Notes under the pieces: generated by a model
Told to the model about the DNA's origin: nothing
Databases searched by the model: none
Seen by the model: the letters and a program-made list of their open reading frames with translations, nothing else
Assembly: GCF_000009045.1 (NCBI RefSeq)
Contig: NC_000964.3
Span: 806,001 to 870,000, forward strand
Source of the DNA: Bacillus subtilis subsp. subtilis str. 168
Lineage (GTDB): Bacteria > Bacillota > Bacilli > Bacillales > Bacillaceae
Direction of reading: 5' to 3'
Length of the DNA stretch: 64,000 nucleotides
Made by a program: the position numbers and the translations under genes
Shown: positions 2,562-16,902 of the stretch, one piece after another
Layout of the letters: each line of letters begins with the position of its first letter
Position numbering within the stretch: the first letter of the stretch is position 1

Positions 2562-3422
2562 ATGGAATTGACCATAAATACGGAAAAAGAAACCGCAGAT
2601 ATTCTGGACGCATTTATCAAAGTAGCCCCTTATTTAAACAGCCTGGTTCAGGATGATATTACAATCGGCATTTATGATACGGAAAAACTGCTCGTGAATA
2701 TACCGGCCAAAACCTTTTCGCTGAACGTAAAAGCCGGCGATCCGCTGCAGGAAGGGGATATCATCACAGATGCCATCCGCAGCAATCAGAAGAAGACGAG
2801 CATGGTTCCGAAAGAATTGTTCGGCTTCCCATTGATCGCGCGTGCCATCCCGCTGCACGACGAGAATGGAAGAGTCATTGGAGGCGTCGGCCTCGGAACG
2901 AGCCTTGAGGAGTCGTCAAAGCTGCATGATGTCGCGGAAAGCTTATCAGCTGTTGTTGAACAAACAGCCGCGGCTATTTCCGACATTTCTGAATCAATTA
3001 ACGGGTTTTCAACTCAAATGTCGGGCATTTCCTCTCAGGCGAAAAAAGTAAGCGAAAGCGCCGGTGAAATCGCCGATATTTCAGTAACTGTTAAAGGCAT
3101 CTCGGACCAAAGCAATCTGCTCGGCTTGAACGCCGCGATCGAAGCGGCAAGAGCAGGGGAGTCCGGAAAAGGATTCTCTGTCGTCGCAGATGAGATCAGA
3201 AAGCTAGCGACGCATTCAAAAGAAAATGTCGGCCAAATTGACCAGATTACGAAAAAAATCCACAGCCTGCTGAAAGGGCTGGAGGAATCCATTGAGTCGA
3301 TTAACCAGCATACAGACGGACAAGCCGCTGCTGTTGAACAAATTTCCGCCACGATGCAGGAGATTTCAGGAAGCGCGCAGCATCTTGCGAAAATGGCCGA
3401 AAAAGCGCTTGAGGAAGAGTAA
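2562..3422 (+). CDS. yfmS: Soluble methyl-accepting chemotaxis protein, 286 aa
   Basis: MCP signalling hairpin [32 protein letters not shown]; no transmembrane segment; RBS AAGGAG. Confidence 0.93.
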
Positions 3423-3423
3423 G

Positions 3424-3454
3424 AGACCGGGGACAAACATCCCCGGTCTTTTTC
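3424..3454 (+). terminator. Intrinsic terminator after yfmS
   Basis: AGACCGGGGA / TCCCCGGTCT stem followed by a T run. Confidence 0.85.
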
Positions 3455-3556
3455 TTATCCTGCATTTCCATGAAATTCGTCTGACGTTTTACTAGTTTTA
3501 TTCCAGCGGCTGATTTAAAATGTACACATGAACTTACGTGAGGATTGATAGGAACC

Positions 3557-5446
3557 ATGAGCATATTAAAAGCGGAAAATCTTTATAAAACATACGGAGA
3601 TAAAACATTATTTGACCATATCTCCTTTCATATTGAAGAGAATGAGAGAATCGGATTAATCGGGCCGAACGGAACAGGAAAATCAACGCTGTTGAAAGTG
3701 ATTGCCGGCTTGGAATCTATCGAAGAAGGAGAAATCACGAAATCCGGAAGCGTGCAGGTCGAATTTCTTCATCAAGACCCGGAGCTGCCTGCGGGGCAAA
3801 CAGTGCTGGAGCATATCTATTCCGGTGAATCGGCTGTGATGAAAACCTTGCGTGAATATGAAAAAGCGCTGTATGAACTGGGGAAAGATCCCGAAAATGA
3901 ACAGCGCCAGAAACACCTGCTGGCAGCACAAGCGAAAATGGACGCGAACAATGCATGGGATGCAAACACCTTGGCAAAAACCGTATTGTCTAAGCTGGGC
4001 GTCAACGACGTAACAAAACCGGTCAATGAGCTCTCAGGCGGCCAGAAAAAACGGGTGGCCATTGCCAAAAACTTAATTCAGCCCGCTGATTTGCTCATTT
4101 TGGACGAGCCGACAAACCATTTGGATAATGAAACGATTGAGTGGCTTGAAGGGTATTTAAGCCAATATCCCGGCGCCGTCATGCTGGTGACGCACGATAG
4201 ATATTTCTTAAACCGTGTCACCAACCGCATTTATGAGCTTGAAAGAGGCAGCCTCTACACTTACAAAGGCAACTATGAAGTGTTTTTAGAAAAACGCGCG
4301 GAACGGGAAGCGCAGGCTGAGCAAAAGGAAACGAAGCGGCAAAACCTGCTGCGCCGCGAACTGGCTTGGCTCAGACGAGGAGCGAAAGCCCGCTCCACAA
4401 AACAAAAAGCGAGAATTGACCGGGTAGAGACGCTTAAAGAGCAGACAGGCCCTCAGTCATCAGGTTCACTCGATTTTGCCATTGGCTCGCACCGTCTCGG
4501 AAAACAGGTTATTGAAGCGGAGAACGTCATGATCGCTTATGACGGCCGCATGCTCGTCGACCGTTTTAATGAACTTGTCATACCAGGTGAACGGATCGGG
4601 ATCATCGGGCCGAACGGCATCGGGAAAACAACGCTGTTAAATGCCCTTGCCGGCCGTCATACGCCGGACGGAGGCGATATTACGATCGGACAGACGGTCA
4701 GAATCGGCTACTATACTCAGGATCATAGTGAAATGAACGGTGAGTTAAAAGTCATTGACTATATAAAAGAAACGGCGGAGGTCGTAAAAACGGCAGATGG
4801 CGATATGATTACAGCTGAACAAATGCTCGAGCGTTTCCTCTTCCCGCGTTCGATGCAGCAGACGTATATCCGCAAGCTGTCCGGCGGGGAAAAACGCCGT
4901 TTATACTTGCTTCAGGTTCTCATGCAGGAGCCGAATGTCCTGTTTCTCGATGAGCCGACGAACGATTTGGATACTGAAACATTAAGCGTTCTTGAGGATT
5001 ATATTGACCAGTTCCCAGGCGTCGTCATCACCGTATCCCATGACCGCTATTTCCTTGACCGCGTCGTCGACCGTTTGATTGTATTTGAAGGAAATGGTGT
5101 CATTTCCCGCTTTCAAGGCTCCTATAGCGACTATATGGAGGAGTCAAAAGCGAAAAAAGCGGCCCCAAAACCGGCAGCTGAGGAAAAAACGGCTGAAGCC
5201 GAGCCGAAGAAAAAACGGAAAAAGCTTTCTTACAAAGACCAGTTGGAATGGGACGGCATCGAAGATAAAATTGCCCAGCTGGAAGAAAAGCATGAACAGC
5301 TTGAAGCTGACATCGCCGCAGCAGGCAGTGATTTTGGCAAAATCCAAGAGCTGATGGCCGAGCAGGCGAAAACGGCGGAAGAGCTTGAGGCTGCGATGGA
5401 CCGCTGGACAGAATTGTCCCTCATGATCGAAGAACTGGAAAGCTAA
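3557..5446 (+). CDS. yfmR: ABC-F ATPase (Uup-like ribosome-associated factor), 629 aa
   Basis: Two NBDs (GPNGTGKS, LSGGQ, LDEPTNHLD; GPNGIGKT, LSGGE, LDEPTNDLD), inter-domain linker, C-terminal KKLSYKDQ coiled coil, no TM segments. Confidence 0.95.
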   Translation: MSILKAENLYKTYGDKTLFDHISFHIEENERIGLIGPNGTGKSTLLKVIAGLESIEEGEITKSGSVQVEFLHQDPELPAGQTVLEHIYSGESAVMKTLREYEKALYELGKDPENEQRQKHLLAAQAKMDANNAWDANTLAKTVLSKLGVNDVTKPVNELSGGQKKRVAIAKNLIQPADLLILDEPTNHLDNETIEWLEGYLSQYPGAVMLVTHDRYFLNRVTNRIYELERGSLYTYKGNYEVFLEKRAEREAQAEQKETKRQNLLRRELAWLRRGAKARSTKQKARIDRVETLKEQTGPQSSGSLDFAIGSHRLGKQVIEAENVMIAYDGRMLVDRFNELVIPGERIGIIGPNGIGKTTLLNALAGRHTPDGGDITIGQTVRIGYYTQDHSEMNGELKVIDYIKETAEVVKTADGDMITAEQMLERFLFPRSMQQTYIRKLSGGEKRRLYLLQVLMQEPNVLFLDEPTNDLDTETLSVLEDYIDQFPGVVITVSHDRYFLDRVVDRLIVFEGNGVISRFQGSYSDYMEESKAKKAAPKPAAEEKTAEAEPKKKRKKLSYKDQLEWDGIEDKIAQLEEKHEQLEADIAAAGSDFGKIQELMAEQAKTAEELEAAMDRWTELSLMIEELES

Positions 5447-5568: not shown

Positions 5569-6015
5569 ATGACATGGGCGATCGTGATGTTAATTCTCAT
5601 GAGTCTGGTGAAAATCGTATTAACCTGTCTTCCTACAGGCGTCATAGAATGGCTGCTCGGCAAATTTGAAGTGCACGCCAAGCTGAGTGACGAAAATGCG
5701 AGTCTCTCTCTAGATGGAAAACGCCTCGAGGGTGCAGAGAAGCAGAAAGTGATTGATCAATTTAACGAAGCTATCTTCCTGGAAAAATATTATATCTATC
5801 CAGGTGATGAAGAGCGTTATTTACATCCGGAAAACGGCGGCACGCCTCTGGTGATAGATACAAAAAAAGGAAAAAAAGACGTGAAGCTGTTCGTGTACCG
5901 CTACGACGACCATATCGACGTCGTGAAACAGTACAAGAAGAAAGTGATCGCGTATCGAGTGCTTTCTGAAAGCCTTCAAAAAGAGTCTCTGTCAGTGGCG
6001 GGAAGTTTAGCTTAA
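5569..6015 (+). CDS. yfmQ: Uncharacterised protein with N-terminal membrane anchor, 148 aa
   Basis: Clean ORF with RBS GGAG; hydrophobic N-terminus MTWAIVMLILMSLVKIV; gene order. Confidence 0.85.
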   Translation: MTWAIVMLILMSLVKIVLTCLPTGVIEWLLGKFEVHAKLSDENASLSLDGKRLEGAEKQKVIDQFNEAIFLEKYYIYPGDEERYLHPENGGTPLVIDTKKGKKDVKLFVYRYDDHIDVVKQYKKKVIAYRVLSESLQKESLSVAGSLA

Positions 6016-6073
6016 ACAGGAAAGTGAAAGACGGGTGCTGTATGCTGCTCGTCTTTTTTATTGTTTTTTAAAA

Positions 6074-6109
6074 CTTAACGTTTACGTTAAGGTTCAAAAG
6101 GTGTATAAT
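6074..6109 (+). promoter_or_regulatory. yfmPO sigma-A promoter with overlapping MerR-type palindrome
   Basis: CTTAACGT-TT-ACGTTAAG at 6074-6091 overlaps TTTACG (6081-6086), which lies 17 bp before TATAAT (6104-6109). Confidence 0.7.
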
Positions 6110-6139
6110 GGTAACAGAAACGGCGAAGGGGGATTTACC

Positions 6140-6562
6140 TTGGAATGGATGAAGATTGATCAAGTGGCCAAAAGAAGCGGGCTGACAAAGCGGACCATCC
6201 GGTTTTATGAAGAAATCGGCTTGATTCCGGCGCCGAAACGGACAGACGGCGGTGTAAGGCTTTATTCAGAGGATGATATGGAGGAGCTTGAGAAAGTCAT
6301 CAGCACAAAAGAGGTGCTCGGTTTTTCCCTTCAGGAGCTTCAGCATTTCATGGAAACCAGCCGCCAGCTAGAGTTAAACAAAGAGGGGTATTTGTTGTCA
6401 CTGGATCCTAAGGAACGGAAAGAAAAACTGGAGGAAATTCAGGAAACCCTGAATCACCAGCTGGATTTGATTGATGAGAAAATCCGCACATTCCAAAGCT
6501 TTAAAGAACGCCTGCAGGGCATGAAAGGCAAAGCGGAACGCGCCATTCAATCAATCGAATGA
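6140..6562 (+). CDS. yfmP: MerR-family transcriptional regulator, 140 aa
   Basis: MerR HTH IDQVAKRSGLTKRTIRFYEEIGLI...GVRLYS; TTG start after GAAGGGGG. Confidence 0.92.
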   Translation: MEWMKIDQVAKRSGLTKRTIRFYEEIGLIPAPKRTDGGVRLYSEDDMEELEKVISTKEVLGFSLQELQHFMETSRQLELNKEGYLLSLDPKERKEKLEEIQETLNHQLDLIDEKIRTFQSFKERLQGMKGKAERAIQSIE

Positions 6563-6627
6563 AAAGTTTGTTAAACGCTATTTTTGTAGCGTTTCTTTTA
6601 ATGGAATAAAGATGGAGGTTAGGTCAA

Positions 6628-7818
6628 ATGGATAAGACAACACAAGTGAATCAGAAAACGGGTTTGCTCAGCCAGCCAAAAGCGGTATGGGCTGTCGCGT
6701 TTGCCTGTGTGATTTCTTTTATGGGAATCGGGCTGGTCGATCCAATTCTTCCGGCCATTGCCGCACAATTGCATGCTTCACCTAGTGAAGTATCACTCTT
6801 GTTTACAAGTTATTTGCTTGTAACCGGATTTATGATGTTTTTCTCAGGAGCCATTTCCAGCCGCATCGGCGCGAAATGGACATTAATTCTCGGACTTATT
6901 TTTATTATTGTGTTTGCGGGGCTTGGCGGCAGCTCAAGCTCAATCGCTCAGTTAGTCGGCTATCGCGGCGGCTGGGGATTAGGGAATGCTTTGTTTATTT
7001 CAACAGCGCTTGCGGTCATCGTTGGCGTGTCAGTCGGCGGCAGCGCCCAAGCGATTATTTTGTATGAGGCCGCGCTCGGTCTCGGGATTTCTGTCGGGCC
7101 GCTTGCAGGCGGAGAGCTCGGAAGCATTTCATGGCGCGCACCGTTTTTTGGAGTATCTGTCCTGATGTTTATTGCGTTAATCGCGATTTCTTTCATGCTT
7201 CCGAAGCTGCCGAAACCGGCGAAACGCGTCGGTGTGTTTGATGCGATGAAGGCACTCAAATATAAAGGCCTGCTGACAATGGCGGTATCGGCATTCCTAT
7301 ACAACTTTGGATTTTTTATTTTGCTAGCTTATTCTCCGTTCGTACTGGATTTAGATGAACACGGTCTTGGATATGTCTTCTTCGGCTGGGGCCTTCTGCT
7401 GGCGATTACGTCAGTCTTTACGGCGCCGCTCGTGCACAAAGCGCTGGGCACAGTGCGTTCGCTAGTCGTTCTCTTTATCGCCTTTGCGGCCATTCTCGTT
7501 ATTATGGGGATCTGGACAGACCATCAGACTTTGATTATTACATGTATCGTTGTCGCTGGTGCTGTCCTCGGTATGGTGAATACGATCATGACAACCGCTG
7601 TGATGGGTTCTGCGCCGGTTGAACGTTCAATCGCGTCTTCAGCCTACAGCTCAGTCCGCTTCATCGGCGGCGCGCTCGCCCCGTGGATTGCAGGAATGCT
7701 GTCAGAACACTTTACTGCAAGCACACCATATACAGTAGGCGGAATCGTCGTTTTTGTCGGCATGCTTGTCCTTCTCATGGGACGTAAACATCTTGCTGGA
7801 ATTAAGGCGGGGCATTAA
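6628..7818 (+). CDS. yfmO: MFS efflux transporter, 396 aa
   Basis: About 12 hydrophobic segments; MFS motif A-like GAISSRIGAK; RBS GGAGG. Confidence 0.92.
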   Translation: MDKTTQVNQKTGLLSQPKAVWAVAFACVISFMGIGLVDPILPAIAAQLHASPSEVSLLFTSYLLVTGFMMFFSGAISSRIGAKWTLILGLIFIIVFAGLGGSSSSIAQLVGYRGGWGLGNALFISTALAVIVGVSVGGSAQAIILYEAALGLGISVGPLAGGELGSISWRAPFFGVSVLMFIALIAISFMLPKLPKPAKRVGVFDAMKALKYKGLLTMAVSAFLYNFGFFILLAYSPFVLDLDEHGLGYVFFGWGLLLAITSVFTAPLVHKALGTVRSLVVLFIAFAAILVIMGIWTDHQTLIITCIVVAGAVLGMVNTIMTTAVMGSAPVERSIASSAYSSVRFIGGALAPWIAGMLSEHFTASTPYTVGGIVVFVGMLVLLMGRKHLAGIKAGH

Positions 7819-7823
7819 TAACG

Positions 7824-7853
7824 AAAGACACTGCGCATATGCAGTGTCTTTTT
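7824..7853 (+). terminator. Intrinsic terminator after yfmO
   Basis: AAGACACTGC / GCAGTGTCTT stem followed by a T run. Confidence 0.85.
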
Positions 7854-7903
7854 ATTCGTTATAATGCATCATAATCGAATTGGTGCAGGAAAGGACAACC
7901 TTT

Positions 7904-8347
7904 ATGACACAATTTTACTATTTTCCGGCTGAAAACTCCCTTTAGAAACCGGTTTTTTCGGTCAGCAAGAACGGCGTTCGCGGAAAGGGCATCCGCTTCG
8001 GTCAGGCATTGATGCGGCTGGGATTTATCTTGCAGAAGCTGAGAATGTGTCCGTTCATTTACGATTGCCATTTCAGTGATGGTTCATGCTGTAGAGGGGA
8101 CGTTTGCCATGGATAAGGCAAAACCTGACGAATATGATCAGAAATGTTTAGAAACGCTCTATCAATACATACACAGCGTCATGAAAAACAGCTTTTCTCG
8201 GTCGAGTGGTTTACCGCTTGGGAAGATGAGGAGGATTTTGAGCTGTCTGCCAAAAGAGAGCTGACACTTGATGAATTCACATCTCCATTGCAGCTCATTT
8301 TAAAAGACAGAGAGCTTTTGAGAATCGTTCAGAAAAAATGGCAGTAA
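7904..8347 (+). pseudogene. yfmN: Probable frameshifted pseudogene containing the short yfmN ORF (8109-8264)
   Basis: AGGAAAGGA RBS and ATG at 7904 stop after 13 codons; three successive -1 frame changes join four segments into about 148 codons ending at TAA 8347 just before a terminator. Confidence 0.55.
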
Positions 8348-8378
8348 AAAACCCGCCCTTTAGCAGGCGGGTTTTTTT
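8346..8378. terminator. Bidirectional terminator between the yfmN region and yfmM
   Basis: AAAAAACCCGCC / GGCGGGTTTTTT. Confidence 0.85.
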
Positions 8379-8383
8379 ATAAA

Positions 8384-9940
8384 TTAAAGCACTTTCGTCG
8401 TCCAAGACTCGCAGTTCCACGTTTCTGTCGCAATATCCATATAAAAGTCTGGCTCGTGGGAAATGAGCAGAATGGAGCCTTTATATTCTTTCAGGGCGCG
8501 CTTGAGCTCTTCCTTGGCATCGGCATCCAAGTGGTTTGTCGGCTCATCGAGCACCAGCAGGTTTGTTTCTGAGTTGATTAGCTTGCACAATCTGACTTTC
8601 GCTTTTTCGCCTCCGCTTAATACGGAGACGCGGCTTTCGATATGCTTTGTCGTCAGCCCGCATTTTGCCAGAGCGGCACGGATTTCATACTGCGTATAAG
8701 AAGGGAATTCGCTCCATACTTCTTCGATGCACGTATTGTTGTTTGTTTCCTTGACCTCTTGCTCGAAATAGCCGGTATAGATGTGCTCACCGCGTTCAAC
8801 AGAGCCTTCGAGCGGCTGGATTTCACCAAGCAAACTTTTCAGCAATGTCGTTTTTCCGATCCCATTCGCGCCGTAAAGGGCGATTTTTTGGCCGCGCTCC
8901 ATGCGGAGGTTGAGCGGACGGGACAGCGGGGAATCGTAACCGATCACGAGATCCTTCGTTTCAAAAATCAGCTTGCCTGACGTTCTCGCCGGCTTAAAGT
9001 GGAATTCCGGCTTTGGCTTTTCTGCCGCAAGCTCGATCATATCCATCTTATCGAGTTTCTTTTGGCGGGACATCGCCATGTTTCTCGTGCTGACACGCGC
9101 TTTGTTGCGGGCGACGAAATCCTTCAGCTCCGCGACTTCCTGCTGCTGCTTTTTGTAGGCCGCTTCAAGCTGCTGTTTTTTCACCTCGTAGACTTCCATA
9201 AACTGATGGTAGTCGCCGACATAACGTGTCAGCTCTTGATTTTCAACGTGATAAATCAGGTTGATGACACTATTCAAGAACGGAATATCGTGGGAAATCA
9301 GGATGAACGCGTTCTCGTATTCCTGCAGGTAGCGTTTCAGCCATTCAATATGCTGTTCATCAAGATAGTTGGTCGGCTCATCGAGAAGCAGAATTTCCGG
9401 CTTTTCAAGGAGAAGCTTAGCGAGAAGGACCTTTGTGCGCTGTCCGCCGCTCAAATCGGTGACATCTCGCTCTAAACCGATATCGCTCAAACCGAGACCG
9501 CGGGCGATTTCTTCCACCTTGGAATCAATGACATAAAAATCATTGTTTGTCAGCGCGTCTTGAATGACGCCGACTTCTTCAAGCAGCTTCTCGAGCTCGT
9601 CGGGATCAGCCTCGCCCATTTTGTTGTAAATCTCGTTCATTTCCTCTTCCATCGCAAATAAATAATGGAATGCGTCTTTCAGGACGTCGCGAATGGATTT
9701 TCCTTTTTCCAGCACGGTATGCTGATCAAGGTATCCGACACGGACATTTTTTGACCATTCGACTTTTCCCTCATCAGGTTCAAGCTTTCCGGTAATAATA
9801 TTCATGAAGGTTGATTTTCCTTCACCGTTTGCGCCGATCAAGCCGACGTGCTCGCCTTTTAACAGGCGGAAGGAAACGTTATTAAAAATGGCCCGGTCCC
9901 CGAAACCGTGGCTTAAATCCTTTACAGATAAAATACTCAT
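8384..9940 (-). CDS. yfmM: ABC-F ATPase, 518 aa
   Basis: Two NBDs (GANGEGKS, LSGGQ; GANGIGKT, LSGGE, LDEPTNHLD), no TM segments; RBS AGAGGTG before ATG 9940. Confidence 0.94.
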   Translation of the reverse strand: MSILSVKDLSHGFGDRAIFNNVSFRLLKGEHVGLIGANGEGKSTFMNIITGKLEPDEGKVEWSKNVRVGYLDQHTVLEKGKSIRDVLKDAFHYLFAMEEEMNEIYNKMGEADPDELEKLLEEVGVIQDALTNNDFYVIDSKVEEIARGLGLSDIGLERDVTDLSGGQRTKVLLAKLLLEKPEILLLDEPTNYLDEQHIEWLKRYLQEYENAFILISHDIPFLNSVINLIYHVENQELTRYVGDYHQFMEVYEVKKQQLEAAYKKQQQEVAELKDFVARNKARVSTRNMAMSRQKKLDKMDMIELAAEKPKPEFHFKPARTSGKLIFETKDLVIGYDSPLSRPLNLRMERGQKIALYGANGIGKTTLLKSLLGEIQPLEGSVERGEHIYTGYFEQEVKETNNNTCIEEVWSEFPSYTQYEIRAALAKCGLTTKHIESRVSVLSGGEKAKVRLCKLINSETNLLVLDEPTNHLDADAKEELKRALKEYKGSILLISHEPDFYMDIATETWNCESWTTKVL

Positions 9941-11809: not shown

Positions 11810-12829
11810 TCAGCTCGGATCACTGACCTTGATCAGCTGTTTCCCTTTATTTTCTCCCTTAAATAAACCGAGAAACGCGTCAGGAATGTTTTCGAAGCCT
11901 TCTGTGATGGTTTCCTCGTAATGGAGTTTACCAGCCTTCAGCCATTCTGCCAGCTGTTTTGCTCCCTCAGAAAAACGATCGGAGTAGTCGCTTACGATAA
12001 AGCCTTGCATCAGCGACTTCGTTTTAATGAGTTTTGATTGGACACGAGGGCCCATGTCATCTGCTTCGCTTTCTGCGTTATAGGAAGAAATGGCGCCGCA
12101 CACCGGAATGCGGGCAAATTCATTGAGCAGATTCATCACCGCGTCTGAAATCGGTCCGCCGACATTGTCAAAATACACATCGACACCGTCAGGACAAGCG
12201 TTTTGAAGCGCTTTTTGGATATCATCCGCTGTTTTGTAATTGATGGCTTCGTCAAACTGAAGCTCCTGTTTTAAATAGTCGATTTTTTCATCAGAGCCCG
12301 CGATGCCGACGACTCGCGCGCCTTTGATTTTGGCAATTTGCCCGACTGTTGAACCGACGGCTCCGGCAGCTCCTGAGACAACCACGGTTTCGCCTTCCTT
12401 CGGGCGTCCGATGTCCAGCAATCCGAAGTATGCTGTTAAGCCGGTCATTCCCAAAATGCCGAGATAGGCCGAAGCGGGAGCAAGGCTTGTATCAATTTTT
12501 CGCAAGGCAGACTCGCTCACAGCGGAAAATTCCTGCCAGCTGAGATTTCCGATGACGATATCGCCTTTTTTCAGATGATTCCCGTCTGACACAACTTCAG
12601 CGATAACCCCTCCAGAAAGCGCTTTATCCAAGGCGAACGGCTCAACATATGACTTCGTATCCTGCATACGGCCGCGCATATAAGGGTCAACCGATACATA
12701 AAGCGTTTTGACAAGCACTTCCCCTTGCTTGGGTTCAGGAACCGGAATGGTTTCAAAGCGAAAGTCTTCATGAACAGGAATACCTTGTGGACGTCTTGCT
12801 AATTGAATTTGCTGCTGAGATGCTGTCAT
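11810..12829 (-). CDS. yfmJ: NADP-dependent Zn-independent MDR oxidoreductase (CurA/PGR-like), 339 aa
   Basis: LARRPQGIP, SVDPYMRGRM, GMTGLTAYFGL, VSGAAGAVG, DVYFDNVGG, GKQL; RBS GGAGG. Confidence 0.93.
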   Translation of the reverse strand: MTASQQQIQLARRPQGIPVHEDFRFETIPVPEPKQGEVLVKTLYVSVDPYMRGRMQDTKSYVEPFALDKALSGGVIAEVVSDGNHLKKGDIVIGNLSWQEFSAVSESALRKIDTSLAPASAYLGILGMTGLTAYFGLLDIGRPKEGETVVVSGAAGAVGSTVGQIAKIKGARVVGIAGSDEKIDYLKQELQFDEAINYKTADDIQKALQNACPDGVDVYFDNVGGPISDAVMNLLNEFARIPVCGAISSYNAESEADDMGPRVQSKLIKTKSLMQGFIVSDYSDRFSEGAKQLAEWLKAGKLHYEETITEGFENIPDAFLGLFKGENKGKQLIKVSDPS

Positions 12830-12929
12830 TTTCATCCTCCTATCACTTGGTTGACACCACTGTAACATGGACAGGAGAGGAAATACAAAAGGTAAGCTGG
12901 CATACAAAAAAGGTTATAGATGAGCTTAT

Positions 12930-13235
12930 GCTTTCTACAAGCTCTTTTGTTTTAAAAGTTCTCTTTAGTCATTTATCATTATTAGAAAACAGAACAGAAA
13001 AAGAGCTCCTGTACACCTAGCTAAGATTGGCTAGTGTGTATGTCGATTCTTTTTCATATTCTTGCAAGCATCTGCGAGGGGGAGCTTAGTCGTTCACATT
13101 TTGCTTTCGCATCAATCTGCAATAGCAAAGTCTATGCGATTTTTTTACATCAGCAAAGATTTGTTCAATTTTTTCCTTTTATGCCGAGTTTTTCTGAAAC
13201 AGATAATTGATGGTACTCAACCATTTTCTTTTGGT
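12930..13235 (-). mobile_element. Degenerate 3' remnant of an IS1182-family-like transposase (left copy)
   Basis: Minus strand reads ...QLSVSEK / KEKIEQIFADVKKSHRLCYCRLMRKQNVND* / ACKNMKK with stop and frameshifts; resembles, from memory, the IS1182 C-terminus KEKIERSFADSKQLHGLRYCRLRG...ACQNMKKIA. Confidence 0.65.
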
Positions 13236-13310
13236 CAATAAAGTAATGTTTACTTATTAATTAAACACGCGAAAAAGCAAACGAAAACATAATTAAATTT
13301 TATATATTTA

Positions 13311-14531
13311 TTAAAAGCTTATATGTTTATTTACCTTTTTTTTGAATTGTAATTGAGAAAATCCATATATTGCGGACACTAATAAAAGAATACCTGCTGA
13401 AACATAAACTAAACGAACTCCAAGGAAATCTGAAATAGCCCCTATAGCCAGAATTGAAAACATAAAAATGAACTGTACTAAAGAAGACCTTGCAGACATT
13501 ATATTAATTCGAGTTTGCTCGGTTGTTATGTTCTGAATAAGTGTTTCTTGTGTAAGATCTCTTAATATATAAGCCGGCCCCATAAAGAGAACCAAAATTA
13601 GAGCTAAGTATGAATTACTTATAAAACCATATATTAAAGTTAAACTTCCATATGAGACAGCGCCAATTAACATAAAATTAATTAACTTATTTTGAAATCT
13701 CTCCGACAGCTTATATATTATAAATCCCCCTATCATCGAACCTAAATAATATGCTCCATTAATAAATCCCCACCATGATTCTCCTTTATGCAAGACTTCG
13801 TTAACGAAAGCTAAAGAGACAGATCCTATCCAAATCATTCCTGCCCATGACTCAATTAAATCCATAATAATAATTGTTCTAAGTTTCTTTTGGCTAAATA
13901 AATACCGCCAACCACTTACTATACTCTTATTGGGAGAATTTTTTTCACGTATGACAGAATTAGCGTGGCCATGTGGTAGACAAAATAAAAGAGAAAGAAG
14001 AGATGTAAACAACAAAAAGATAGTAAGTATAATGGTATATCCCTCACCTAAAAATGCAATTATGAGACCACCTAAAGACCAGCCTACAAATTGAAAAGTT
14101 TGGTCCACTGTAGATAATAATCCATTTGCTTTTACTCTTCTATCAGGAGAGATTATTTCCCCTATAATTGCACTTTTTAAAGGTGAGAACCATCCATTAA
14201 AAAAGGAAATACAGCTAATAATAATAAAGACTAAAATGAGAGTTTGATTAGAGTAAGTTCTTAATAAAGCATAGAACAAACATATTAATAACAGCATTTG
14301 TATCAATTGAGAAATAATTATTGTAAGAGGCAGTTTTAATCGAATTGTTATTAACGGTAATATAGCACTTCCAAAAATACGAAAAATAATACTTATTAAT
14401 GTCACCATAGAGGCGATGGTTGTCGAATTGGTCATTTTAAACAAAAACGAAATCACTACCATAGTATATAGAGAAAAACCTAAATTTGTAGTGGTCTGGC
14501 TAAATAAAATAGAATAATAACCTTTACTCAT
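13311..14531 (-). CDS. yfmI: MFS exporter (DHA3/MefA-like), 406 aa, AT-rich
   Basis: About 12 TM segments; SQTTTNLGFSLY N-terminus, PLKSAIIGEII, RVKANGLLSTVDQ; RBS AGGGAGG. Confidence 0.9.
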   Translation of the reverse strand: MSKGYYSILFSQTTTNLGFSLYTMVVISFLFKMTNSTTIASMVTLISIIFRIFGSAILPLITIRLKLPLTIIISQLIQMLLLICLFYALLRTYSNQTLILVFIIISCISFFNGWFSPLKSAIIGEIISPDRRVKANGLLSTVDQTFQFVGWSLGGLIIAFLGEGYTIILTIFLLFTSLLSLLFCLPHGHANSVIREKNSPNKSIVSGWRYLFSQKKLRTIIIMDLIESWAGMIWIGSVSLAFVNEVLHKGESWWGFINGAYYLGSMIGGFIIYKLSERFQNKLINFMLIGAVSYGSLTLIYGFISNSYLALILVLFMGPAYILRDLTQETLIQNITTEQTRINIMSARSSLVQFIFMFSILAIGAISDFLGVRLVYVSAGILLLVSAIYGFSQLQFKKKVNKHISF

Positions 14532-14728
14532 ATGTATCCTCCCTTGGAATAATTTTTCTCGGTAAAGAGCTTAAACATATTTAAACACCTTAAAACAACA
14601 AAAGTAAAGAAAAAATTTCCTTGTAAACTATTTACTTTTATTCTATTTATTGTTATTGTTTATTTAAGTTCTCTGACTATTCTATCAATATTCAGGGAAC
14701 CACATATCTTATTAAAGGGGGGAAAACC

Positions 14729-14800
14729 ATGAGAAAATTAAGAAAAAACTGGAGAAAATCGATTGTTAGCCCGGTTCTTTATACTAATGAAAAATGGTAA
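14729..14800 (+). CDS. yfmH: 23-aa peptide MRKLRKNWRKSIVSPVLYTNEKW (below ORF-track cut-off)
   Basis: AAAGGGGGG RBS, 6 nt to ATG 14729, TAA at 14798-14800; directly upstream of yfmG. Confidence 0.75.
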   Translation: MRKLRKNWRKSIVSPVLYTNEKW

Positions 14801-14808
14801 ACACTTAG

Positions 14809-14831
14809 GGAATAGCATTTAATGCTATTCC
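14809..14831 (+). other. Perfect 11-bp inverted repeat between yfmH and yfmG
   Basis: GGAATAGCATT-T-AATGCTATTCC. Confidence 0.85.
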
Positions 14832-14866
14832 TTATTTCAACAAACAAATCGGGAGGTTATCGTAAT

Positions 14867-16330
14867 TTGACTCTATTAATGCAAGATCATAAATCAATTT
14901 ACAATAAAGATATAGAAATATTAATTGAAGTTGAAGAACTTATTACTTCTGTTCCAGAAAATAAAAAAAATGATTTTAAGAGTTTAATCGATAATAGAAT
15001 TATGACTCTACTAAATAAAATTCAACACCCTGTAGCAGCGGAAAATGTGTTTGGGATGTGTATTGCTTATCCGAATACTTACATAAGGTATAGATTAATT
15101 GATTTCGTTGAAAAATGGGTACCTTATTTCTCTGCTGTAGAAACTATAATCAATCTAACCCAGGATCCGGATGATTTAGTTTCTTTTAAAGCTATGGATG
15201 TCTGTGCAAATCATAAAATTGAAGAATCTGTAGCATATTTGTCTTCGATTATTGATGATGTCCGGGAGAGTATAAGCTACCCTAAAAAACCTGTGGGATT
15301 AGGGGCCCAAAAAGTATTAAGTACATTATTAGATATATTCGGTGTTGAAAAACATGAAGAGCTAGTAATGCTAAAAAATTATTTTGATCAAAATGGTATA
15401 CTTCCTAATAACTTTGACTTTGAAGAAAAAATTCCTCAAAGTCTAATAGAGGAATTCGAAAAAACAGAAGAAGATGGGATGATTTTAATTCCGGGTGGCT
15501 TTTTTGAATTCGGTTTAAATGAAAATGAAATTCCTGACAAAACATTTAATTGGAAAGATGCTGTTCCTAGACAAAAAGTATGGTTACCTCCATTTTTTAT
15601 CGATAAGTATCCTGTTACAAATAAAGATTATGATATCTTTACCGAGTTCATAGAGGAAAATGGGCATATATTCTGTCATCCTAATGAACCGCAGAATAAA
15701 CAACATAGAAGAAATACATATTGGGATGATAGGTATTTAGATAATCATCCCGTTACAGGTATAGATTTTTATGATGCATTTGCTTACGCAAGATATAAGG
15801 GGAAAGAATTGCCAACCGAGTTTCAATGGGAAAAAGCTGCTCGAGGCGAAAAGGGTAATGTCTGGCCTTGGGGAGATAAATTTGATCCTGCAAAGGTTCA
15901 ATATGCTGGAAGTCTTTATAATGAACCCATTACTTCTTTAAAGTCCTGGAGAGAAAATTTATTAAAAGCTCATGCTGATAAAGAATTAAATCATTTAACA
16001 AGTGATATTTTTGAACAAAATGGTGAAAGTCCCTATGGAGTATGCGGTATGATCGGCGGAACATGGGAGTGGACTAGAAGTGAGCTTAAAACAAAGAGAG
16101 CTTTCCACCCTATTTTTGAGAATGTACCATTTAATAGTGTTAACTCATTTGCCGTTCTTAAAGGAGGATCATTCTTCTCTCATCCAGGCTTAATGTTCCC
16201 TTCTTTTAGAGCAAAAGATATTCCTTTCTGTCGACACAATGAAATGGGGATTAGATGCGTAAAGAATATTCCAGTATATAAAATTAGAGAATCAATTAAT
16301 GGGCCAATTACTAATAAAGCAATTTATTAA
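14867..16330 (+). CDS. yfmG: FGE/SUMF1-sulfatase-modifying-fold protein with helical N-terminal domain, 487 aa
   Basis: MILIPGGFFEFG, FFIDKYPVTN, HPVTGIDFYDAFAYA, LPTEFQWEKAARG, WPWG, SPYGVCGMIGGTWEWT, LKGGSF, GIRCV; GGGAGG then TTG at 14867. Confidence 0.88.
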   Translation: MTLLMQDHKSIYNKDIEILIEVEELITSVPENKKNDFKSLIDNRIMTLLNKIQHPVAAENVFGMCIAYPNTYIRYRLIDFVEKWVPYFSAVETIINLTQDPDDLVSFKAMDVCANHKIEESVAYLSSIIDDVRESISYPKKPVGLGAQKVLSTLLDIFGVEKHEELVMLKNYFDQNGILPNNFDFEEKIPQSLIEEFEKTEEDGMILIPGGFFEFGLNENEIPDKTFNWKDAVPRQKVWLPPFFIDKYPVTNKDYDIFTEFIEENGHIFCHPNEPQNKQHRRNTYWDDRYLDNHPVTGIDFYDAFAYARYKGKELPTEFQWEKAARGEKGNVWPWGDKFDPAKVQYAGSLYNEPITSLKSWRENLLKAHADKELNHLTSDIFEQNGESPYGVCGMIGGTWEWTRSELKTKRAFHPIFENVPFNSVNSFAVLKGGSFFSHPGLMFPSFRAKDIPFCRHNEMGIRCVKNIPVYKIRESINGPITNKAIY

Positions 16331-16384
16331 TCATTCTAGGTTAGAGACTTGATAAAAGTATACTAACATTGTGTAGTAATGTTC

Positions 16385-16670
16385 AGCTTGTAGAAAAAAC
16401 AATGTTTTTTCTACAAGATTTTATTTTAAATGCTTTTCAAAATTATCAGGGATTGAGAATCAGAAAAAGAGCCATTAAGCTCGATCTTAGCTAGGTATTA
16501 CGATCTTCTGTATATTATTGTGAGAAATATAGAAGATTCAGTTAGTTAGCATTTCGATTTTAAGCTGAGCCTGCAATAGCAAAGCATCTGTTTTGATTAT
16601 TCTTTTTCTGATACATAAGCTAATTTTGTCGCTTTTCTTTTTTGTCTTTTCACGCATTTCGAGGATGACT
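16385..16670 (-). mobile_element. Second, more decayed IS1182-like 3' remnant (right copy), same orientation as the left copy
   Basis: Shares TTTCTACAAG, CAGAAAAAGAGC and CTGCAATAGCAAAG with the left copy in the same order; minus strand reads RNA*KDKKEKRQN*L..., KQMLCYCRL, NIQKIV..LAK. Confidence 0.6.
16387..16427 (+). terminator. 14-bp perfect hairpin plus T run after yfmG (probably also part of the IS end)
   Basis: CTTGTAGAAAAAAC-AAT-GTTTTTTCTACAAG followed by ATTTTATTTT. Confidence 0.7.
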
Positions 16671-16850
16671 TACTATAATTCTTTCAGCTTTTCTATGTGT
16701 TAAGATTCGAATAGATGAAATAACTTTAACAAGTTGGTCAATAAGAACAGATTTAACTTTATGTTAAAAGAGTATCTCGTATAGAACATAAGAAGAATGA
16801 CGAGTTTTTTAAGATTATCATCAATTATGTGAGAATAAAATATTATAAGG

Positions 16851-16883
16851 GAAAATGAAGGCTGTCACGTTTCTCGACAGCCC
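16851..16883 (-). terminator. Terminator of the yfmCDEF operon
   Basis: GGCTGTC / GACAGCC stem; T-rich tail on the minus strand. Confidence 0.65.
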
Positions 16884-16902
16884 TAGGGAATTCCTCTCCT
16901 TT

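Follow-up and report, generated by a model that had tools for sequence, protein, structure and literature searches.

Probable leader-peptide attenuation of a mobile enzyme-exporter cassette at the Bacillus subtilis yfmHG locus

Why should a 23-codon open reading frame (ORF) and a hairpin stand directly in front of a large gene for an enzyme-like protein? The question is raised by the yfmI-yfmH-yfmG locus of Bacillus subtilis subsp. subtilis str. 168, which lies within the 64,000-nucleotide (nt) stretch of chromosome analysed here (NC_000964.3, positions 806,001 to 870,000; hereafter the window, in whose own numbering coordinates are given unless a genome coordinate is named). An earlier note on this DNA, made from the letters alone, read the locus as an uncharacterised system resembling those for peptides that are made by ribosomes and modified after translation (RiPPs), in which YfmG would bind or modify the YfmH peptide and YfmI would export the product. 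On balance we favour another reading: that yfmH and its hairpin form a leader-peptide attenuator, probably one that depends on the nascent peptide, and that this device gates a horizontally mobile enzyme-exporter pair. The regulatory half of the feature is explained by the literature; a RiPP-like role for the peptide is one that we hold possible without expecting it. What is new, as far as the literature found goes, is the conservation of the peptide-hairpin-enzyme-exporter cassette across phyla.

The yfmHG leader and its published switch

The same yfmH-hairpin element has already been studied in B. subtilis (Ritchey et al., RNA 2020; PMC7491331). A sigma-A promoter was reported there to initiate transcription 201 nt upstream of the TTG start codon of yfmG; we used this published leader length to place the start at 14666 on the plus strand, in agreement with the 5' end of the short RNA ncr471 at genome coordinate 820666 (PMC2965217). 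Read from the sequence, the promoter (14632-14666, plus strand) would comprise a -35 hexamer, TTTACT, at 14632-14637 and an extended -10 element, TGtTATTGT, at 14651-14659. The yfmH Shine-Dalgarno sequence, AAAGGGGGG, occupies 14714-14722, 6 nt before the ATG, and is followed by yfmH itself (14729-14800, plus strand), a 23-codon leader-peptide gene encoding MRKLRKNWRKSIVSPVLYTNEKW; a yfmH'-'lacZ fusion is translated, and changing the AUG to UAG abolishes this (PMC7491331).

Downstream of yfmH, a stem-loop with a weak U-tract spans 14806-14841 of the plus strand, with arms at 14806-14818 and 14822-14834 that form 13 pairs (one of them G.U) around a 3-nt loop. Its folding energy of -16.1 kcal/mol (z = -6.65) was equalled by none of 200 shuffled sequences. 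A simple terminator scan did not flag this hairpin because of its weak U-tract, and the call as a terminator is based on the folding statistics together with published Term-seq, which revealed a NusA-dependent intrinsic terminator in the yfmG leader and mapped its termination site in vivo (PMC7491331); the weak U-tract fits the published NusA dependence. The stem-loop is the NusA-dependent intrinsic terminator that ends ncr471, a 173-nt RNA spanning genome coordinates 820666-820838 that was also seen independently (PMC2965217). Behind it, the Shine-Dalgarno sequence of yfmG, GGGAGG, lies at 14851-14856 on the plus strand, as read from the sequence and given in the Fig. 8 legend of PMC7491331. 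The longest ORF for yfmG opens at an ATG at 14822, in the hairpin loop, but translation truly begins at the TTG at 14867, which GGGAGG precedes and which PMC7491331 mapped; an annotation based on the ORF would append 15 spurious residues, encoded by 14822-14866. The layout described by the earlier note, with divergent yfmI, yfmH and its strong ribosome-binding site, hairpin, yfmG and terminator, is found element by element at the positions claimed, and only the start of yfmG had to be moved, from the ATG at 14822 to the TTG at 14867.

How this leader behaves is known from the same study (PMC7491331). Amino acids lower expression 8-fold, an effect that resides in the leader and not in the promoter; Lys and Arg together account for a 2.5-fold decrease, Ile, Leu and Val for a 3-fold decrease, and the 13 encoded amino acids combined for almost the full decrease, while amino-acid starvation leads to read-through into yfmG. 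When the yfmH AUG is changed to UAG, downstream expression falls and the amino-acid response of a yfmG'-'lacZ fusion is lost. The model proposed there invokes an anti-antiterminator, an antiterminator that overlaps yfmH, and the terminator, with slow translation of yfmH favouring read-through; the same paper notes that the Term-seq data of Dar et al. from lysogeny broth (LB) did not show the terminator. Elsewhere, yfmHG has been listed as an AbrB-dependent operon that is heterogeneously expressed (PMC8849057). Since the role of the leader peptide and NusA-dependent terminator is published, the unit is not wholly uncharacterised, as the earlier note had it: peptide and hairpin had already been explained as an amino-acid-responsive attenuator. 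Its other statement, that no product is described for these genes, agrees with our finding none in the accessible literature, and none of the papers cited above treats the conservation of yfmH or assigns YfmG or YfmI a function.

In the reading that we favour, yfmH and its hairpin are a ribosome-dependent transcription attenuator: transcription starts at 14666, most transcripts end at the hairpin to yield the 173-nt ncr471, and the mode in which yfmH is translated decides whether RNA polymerase reads through into yfmG. The controlled set would be YfmG and YfmI, a conserved enzyme-exporter pair that travels with the leader. Nascent YfmH itself would join in the sensing, as in an arrest-type leader such as TnaC or ErmCL, rather than act as a meter of codon supply alone.

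A small ORF and hairpin conserved from staphylococci to Streptomyces

A scan of a genome collection with a full-length YfmG profile was swamped by generic domains of the formylglycine-generating enzyme (FGE) type and missed B. subtilis itself, and a metagenome scan with the N-terminal domain gave five loci only; most neighbourhoods were obtained via exact-protein look-ups. Full-length YfmG relatives are patchy in Bacillota, with identities of 77% in Priestia, 66% in Anoxybacillus, ~56% in B. wiedmannii and B. thermophilus, 54% in Kroppenstedtia and 50% in Mammaliicoccus and Staphylococcus kloosii, and with a relative in Paenibacillus also; more distant relatives (30-40% identity) occur in Actinomycetota. 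At no fewer than 19 distinct loci in Bacillota and Actinomycetota (at least 19, that is), a small ORF with a strong Shine-Dalgarno sequence lies on the same strand directly 5' of the HEAT/FGE-like gene, and an MFS (major facilitator superfamily) gene adjoins the yfmG homologue in 22 of 25 loci. The earlier note had named homologues mostly lacking an adjacent peptide as the outcome that would tell against it; what the neighbourhoods hold instead is an adjacent peptide of 20-30 amino acids at 19 loci in two phyla, a length range into which all copies fall and which would fit inside the ribosomal exit tunnel.

These peptides share the motif M..[KR]NW[RK]K...P...KW. Examples come from Priestia (MKKMTKNWKKSIVNPVLYTNAKW), Anoxybacillus (MKKLNKNWRKALSQPTICMQNEKWG), Kroppenstedtia (MKRNWRKGITKPVAFSGAKWG), B. 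wiedmannii (MKKNWRKRLSVALPVFSNEKW), Paenibacillus (MRKNWRKSLKKQVVVQTNEKW), Mammaliicoccus (MKTLERDWKESIFEPVLNVSNDKWD), Streptomyces (MKTLRQWNALRSQRKGGVRPAGKYFKWAA) and Spirillospora (MKVVRKWNALRSERVGAVRPAGRHFKWST). Written as a regular expression and run over all six frames of 1.06 Mb, the motif gave 17 matches, each directly 5' of a yfmG homologue, and none in five shuffled versions. Among the Streptomyces small ORFs, codon differences that are synonymous only stand to nonsynonymous ones as 5:0, 4:1, 3:1 and 7:2 (6:6 for yfmH between B. subtilis and Priestia); because synonymous changes far outnumber nonsynonymous ones in the Streptomyces copies, the amino-acid sequence is under purifying selection. 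The motif is retained, with synonymous turnover, in genomes from 27% to >65% G+C. The distance from the first to the last Trp is 15-16 residues in all Bacillota copies that have both, despite unequal N-termini, and most family members carry two Trp codons within ~21-25 codons. NCBIfam holds no family for YfmH-type peptides, and by exact look-up they are either missing from the collection searched or carry no label but hypothetical.

Each small ORF has a strong hairpin behind it, the stem beginning -3 to 21 nt past the stop codon where this was measured; in some actinomycete loci the U-tract is weak or lacking. Over 15 loci, pairing of the small ORF with the 5' arm of the terminator averaged z = -0.46 against shuffles, no locus being clearly significant. 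One group of actinomycete loci (L004-L008 and L015, from three genera) carries a hairpin ~10-15 nt past the small-ORF stop with an invariant core, CCTGTGGAGGG / CCCTCCACAGG, although the small ORF varies across them; in L008 and L015 this hairpin has no U-tract. Its arms include Shine-Dalgarno-like (GGAGG) and anti-Shine-Dalgarno-like (CCTCC) sequences, a hint at translational control as well.

Around this constant core the cassette is rearranged. In B. subtilis and Priestia the MFS gene is the divergent one; Kroppenstedtia has it upstream on the same strand, and in Anoxybacillus, the staphylococci and Paenibacillus it comes immediately downstream or overlaps. A PhyH dioxygenase and a second FGE-like paralogue share the operon in Streptomyces, Spirillospora, B. 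wiedmannii and B. thermophilus; in two metagenomic loci and in Paenibacillus gansuensis the added genes encode S-adenosylmethionine (SAM) methyltransferases. Five loci are without the small ORF (L009, the truncated L010, L011, L012 and L098); L011, L012 and L098 belong to more distant clades or to differently organised clusters, and in L098 methyltransferases and an MFS gene accompany a gene of the YfmG clade (41% identity).

Several loci carry features of their own. In L095 (Bacillus thermophilus), an insert of ~1 kb with IS110-like transposase fragments (2968-4000 of that locus) separates an intact small ORF and terminator (2902-2967) from the yfmG homologue, uncoupling the leader. Beside the cassette of L096 (B. 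wiedmannii), at 5587-9476, a HAD hydrolase, an aminotransferase and two ATP-grasp or L-amino-acid-ligase-like genes form one operon that may be an unrelated small-peptide pathway. L011 (Streptomyces sp. NPDC001843) has, at 5841-5966, an acidic 41-codon frame ending in ...EIHKW, 4 nt before the gene and with no hairpin; the frame is open further upstream also and may not be a separate small ORF. The gene that follows encodes a distant HEAT/FGE-like protein (31% identity), and PNPOx and EgtD-like (Methyltransf_33) genes come next. On a Priestia aryabhattai plasmid (L101, 5803-5895), a 30-amino-acid variant of the peptide, MKNFNSIKKARLKVKFNPSLATKWGGGEDD, in which KW is not C-terminal, precedes a terminator, and the plasmid carries an FGE-like gene of the paralogue type and an MFS gene. 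Near the Mammaliicoccus cassette (L087, 10784-13452), there are genes with Endonuclease_NS_2 and Ntox21 domains, of a polymorphic-toxin-like kind.

The enzyme, the exporter and the island

YfmG (14867-16330, plus strand; 487 amino acids) joins a HEAT-like N-terminal part of ~200 residues to a C-terminal domain of the FGE fold. Pfam places an FGE-sulfatase domain (PF03781) at residues 217-481 of the ORF (E = 1e-68), and Foldseek pairs YfmG with FGE structures at a probability of 1.0. The AlphaFold2 model has two domains (pLDDT 86.9, pTM 0.90), of which the N-terminal one is all-helical and HEAT-like and has no invariant His; the Streptomyces homologue weakly matches HEAT_2 there. Human Cys336 and Cys341 are the catalytic, copper-binding pair of FGE. 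In the alignment with wild-type human FGE (8aru), 'GGSYMCHRSYCYRY' of FGE stands opposite 'GGSFFSHPGLMFP' of YfmG; Cys336 gives way to Ser438, a residue that the whole family keeps, and Cys341 to Met. Since both catalytic cysteines are absent, YfmG is not a formylglycine-generating enzyme, and no sulfatase-family gene was found among the called genes of the annotated neighbourhoods or in the B. subtilis island. Nor is it EgtB, because it has no match to the DinB-like domain (PF12867) and scores 106.7 bits against TIGR03440 (EgtB type), where the cut-off is 360; the corresponding figures for SenA are 77 and 420. The family alignment shows a conserved cluster peculiar to this family, His/Cys/His/Glu/His (H267, C270, H271, E274 and H280) together with K278, which we take as a candidate metal site.

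Sequence and fold searches of the PDB place CalU17 closest to YfmG, followed by FGE, EgtB and OvsA. CalU17, from the calicheamicin cluster (PDB 7ml6/6vqp), comes nearest to the C-terminal domain among solved structures (family-profile E = 5e-40; TM score 0.69 on the target) and has in common with YfmG an 'L..WR' insertion that is not in FGE; unlike YfmG, it is without the HEAT-like N-terminal domain and without the H267/C270/H271 cluster. We found no paper on CalU17 in the literature. The FGE-sulfatase fold is also that of FGE (SUMF1), EgtB, OvoA, OvsA and SenA, and EgtB and OvsA are, like YfmG, two-domain proteins with a helical N-terminal domain. YfmG differs from FGE in lacking both copper-binding cysteines and from the EgtB type in having no DinB domain with its 3-His site.

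YfmI (13311-14531, minus strand; 406 amino acids), divergent from yfmHG, matches MFS_1 (PF07690, 1e-22), MFS_3 (PF05977, 4e-12) and TIGR00900 (4e-31), and by these matches is an MFS exporter of the 12-transmembrane-segment type and of the MFS_3/DHA3 group. The earlier note had set it in a RiPP context, and its best NCBIfam match, and nearest curated family, is indeed the ryptide export MFS (NF041056), at a score (169.7 bits) far below the cut-off of 575; Tap is also matched, weakly. Compared with the MFS_3/DHA3 exporters NF041056, Mef, Tap and EntS, YfmI has the MFS_3 and TIGR00900 matches and its best curated hit to the ryptide exporter, with all scores far below the equivalog cut-offs. PADLOC returned no defence-system match for YfmG or YfmI. 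A 'yfmI' mentioned in work on EF-P modification (PMC11381351) looks like a typo for another locus, the passage also spelling it ymfI. Production or modification of a small molecule, followed by its export, is the probable task of the cassette.

Both genes lie in an AT-rich island at ~12,910-16,880 (~30% G+C); the composition profile gives 26-35% G+C from ~12,900 to 16,850 against 45-51% in the flanks. The island is bordered by yfmJ (11810-12907, minus strand) and by iron-citrate ATP-binding cassette (ABC) genes (from 16903, minus strand) and contains yfmI, yfmH, the stem-loop, yfmG and the intrinsic terminator of yfmG (16387-16425, plus strand), a perfect 15-bp stem at 16387-16417 followed by a T-run (-15.7 kcal/mol, z -5.87). 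A further small hairpin stands 3' of yfmG on the minus strand (16469-16482), and AT-rich, apparently non-coding stretches of ~400-480 nt flank the cassette within the island (12908-13310 and 16420-16900). No PhyH remnants were found in the B. subtilis island, integrase and transposase remnants not having been searched for, and Rfam gave no match in the island at E <= 1 and none in the whole window at gathering thresholds. Against the Priestia loci L081 and L091, blastn matches are confined to 13336-14530 and 14714-16331, so that homology between B. subtilis and Priestia is limited to the three genes and the leader; cassette G+C is below that of the flanks also in Kroppenstedtia, Paenibacillus and Anoxybacillus. 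Because its G+C is low relative to the flanks and the B. subtilis-Priestia homology stops at its limits, the cassette moves horizontally as a unit, and the three-gene unit of the earlier note is to that extent supported.

Leader, precursor or both

We take attenuation to be the primary role of yfmH because the small ORF keeps its position while the cassette around it reshuffles, which agrees with the published genetics; the fixed order of small ORF, hairpin and enzyme gene is what a cis-acting regulator requires. Participation of the nascent peptide is suggested because selection acts on the sequence of the peptide and a conserved antiterminator pairing was not detected, and the conserved C-terminus with a conserved site ~15 residues upstream would be the pattern of an arrest peptide acting in the exit tunnel. 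Several points weigh against this picture. The variable tailoring genes of the same operons (PhyH, the second FGE-like protein, methyltransferases) resemble a biosynthetic cluster, and there a conserved small ORF in first place more often encodes a precursor than a leader. The effect of the start-codon mutant could come about via polarity or mRNA stability, and a transcriptional fusion with a mutated yfmH start codon kept its amino-acid response (PMC7491331). No toeprinting or ribosome-profiling data on ribosome stalling at yfmH were found in the literature, and a conserved antiterminator was not detected in the 15 loci with mean z = -0.46. Two actinomycete hairpins are without a U-tract, and since the distance from stop to stem varies from -3 to 21 nt, a simple model in which a stalled ribosome masks the stem does not suit every locus.

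How much of this could be had from codons alone? If YfmH were, as published, a codon string that merely reports the supply of 13 amino acids, its peptide would be conserved only by way of regulatory codons (Trp, Lys/Arg, Ile/Leu/Val) and overlapping RNA structures. The graded lowering of expression by Lys and Arg, by Ile, Leu and Val, and by all 13 amino acids (PMC7491331) is what such a meter would give, two Trp codons in the ~21-25 of most members would suit it, and in B. subtilis and Priestia codons 12-15 of the small ORF are able to pair with the terminator's 5' arm; yet the Pro and Asn positions and the Trp-Trp spacing are conserved too, conservation spans 27% to >65% G+C with synonymous turnover, and no antiterminator pairing conserved across the family was detected, and as the whole explanation we think a supply meter unlikely. 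Less likely again, in our judgement, is a variant of the attenuator in which the cassette confers resistance, a tunnel-binding drug or other xenobiotic stalling the leader, as in ermC, mef/mel and bmrB-bmrCD, and inducing the modifying enzyme along with a DHA3 efflux pump where the MFS gene lies downstream. YfmI matches TIGR00900, which we take to be the DHA3 group with Mef and Tap, and weakly Tap itself; the cassette is mobile and patchy; Anoxybacillus, staphylococci and Paenibacillus carry the MFS gene in one operon with the leader, downstream of it; and any slowing of translation, starvation included, would induce the cassette. Against these, the pump of B. subtilis and Priestia is divergent and lies outside leader control; a dioxygenase, a second FGE-like protein and methyltransferases are uncommon partners in a resistance unit; neither PADLOC nor the other curated libraries gave a resistance or defence match; no response to a drug is on record; and the terminator went undetected in the LB Term-seq of Dar et al. 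(PMC7491331). The '+x+' motif of macrolide stalling, which we also looked for, is not conserved across the YfmH family. That ncr471 acts mainly in trans as a small RNA (sRNA), the ORF being incidental, we regard as very improbable: it was listed as an sRNA candidate (PMC2965217) and seen again with 3.6-fold enrichment with Hfq (PMC3574147), but yfmH is translated (PMC7491331), the peptide is conserved while the nucleotide sequence is not, and no Rfam family matches.

The RiPP-like reading deserves more weight than these, although we hold it only tentatively. YfmH-family peptides would serve as precursors or scaffolds, held by the HEAT-like domain of YfmG, oxidised by its FGE-fold domain, plausibly at the conserved Trp or Lys, and exported by the MFS protein; PhyH, the second FGE-like protein and the methyltransferases would be optional tailoring enzymes, the hairpin would set a high ratio of precursor to enzyme, and translation would act in cis only in a secondary way, unless the peptide were sensor and substrate alike. 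True FGE, after all, acts naturally on a peptide segment. The peptide is co-conserved with enzyme and exporter in two phyla under purifying selection; its N-terminal NW[RK]K, variable middle and C-terminal KW resemble a recognition motif and a core; the operons have variable tailoring enzymes and the exporter last; a RiPP exporter is the best curated match of YfmI; three of the five loci without the small ORF (L011, L012 and L098) are distant clades or differently organised; and yfmHG shares AbrB dependence and heterogeneous expression with sboA-alb and epeXEPAB (PMC8849057). On the other side, no modification of YfmH, no binding to YfmG, no product and no mass-spectrometry data are known in the searchable literature, and the literature available yielded no RiPP enzyme of the FGE fold or of an EgtB-like kind. 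Pfam and NCBIfam give FGE-sulfatase, weak HEAT_2, PhyH, methyltransferase and MFS matches in the cassette loci and no RiPP recognition element (RRE), protease or recognised maturase. Conserved Cys, Ser or Thr are absent from the peptide, which occurs as a single copy per locus, always 5' of the enzyme gene and with a hairpin; the score of YfmI against the ryptide exporter is far under the cut-off (170 against 575 bits); L098 shows that the set of enzyme, methyltransferase and MFS exists without the peptide; and published data already assign a cis-regulatory role (PMC7491331). The RiPP-like proposal of the earlier note keeps its co-conserved peptide and MFS gene but finds no known maturase, RRE or protease and nothing that shows YfmG binding or modifying YfmH. 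Three further candidates were set aside: CoiH, considered as an FGE-like RiPP precedent, is unrelated; the peptides do not contain C/S-x-P-x-R, the substrate motif of FGE, and conserve no more of it than the Pro; and a cationic, Trp-rich antimicrobial peptide was rejected, the staphylococcal copies being net acidic.

Set beside known systems, the proposed attenuator shares with trpL, hisL and pheL of E. coli and with bmrB-bmrCD of B. subtilis a short translated ORF, a terminator and translation-dependent read-through, for yfmH according to PMC7491331. It differs from them in having no run of one regulatory codon, a peptide that is itself conserved across two phyla, no conserved antiterminator detected, and regulated genes that are not an amino-acid biosynthesis operon. 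YfmH is likewise short enough for the exit tunnel, as are the arrest peptides TnaC, SecM, MifM, ErmCL and SpeFL, and combines a C-terminal KW with NW[RK]K ~15-16 residues upstream and a conserved Pro between, an arrangement that presumably recalls W12...D16...P24 of TnaC; it has no sequence similarity to the named arrest peptides. With RiPP clusters (sboA-alb, pqqA-E, mftA-F, streptide, ryptide) the cassette shares gene order, co-conservation of peptide, enzyme and exporter, variable tailoring and AbrB control, but yfmHG has no known maturase class, RRE or protease, and its cis-regulatory role has been shown experimentally.

The B. subtilis switch was published as a one-off RNA or leader device, and the cassette is found here from staphylococci to Streptomyces. 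Ribosome-coupled attenuation is regarded as uncommon in B. subtilis; if yfmH proves to be an arrest-type leader, it would be a widespread sensor of a rare kind. Should the peptide instead prove to be the precursor of a new peptide natural product, its maker would have an enzyme fold that the papers found do not link to RiPPs: a new RiPP-like class, spread by horizontal transfer in Bacillota and Actinomycetota and present in B. subtilis 168, which we consider possible rather than likely, with a HEAT-like/FGE-fold oxidase bearing a His/Cys/His metal site and with YfmH as its substrate, or as in-tunnel sensor and substrate at once. Either outcome would give yfmG and yfmI a function in a model organism and would help to explain that branch of the FGE superfamily to which CalU17-like proteins belong.

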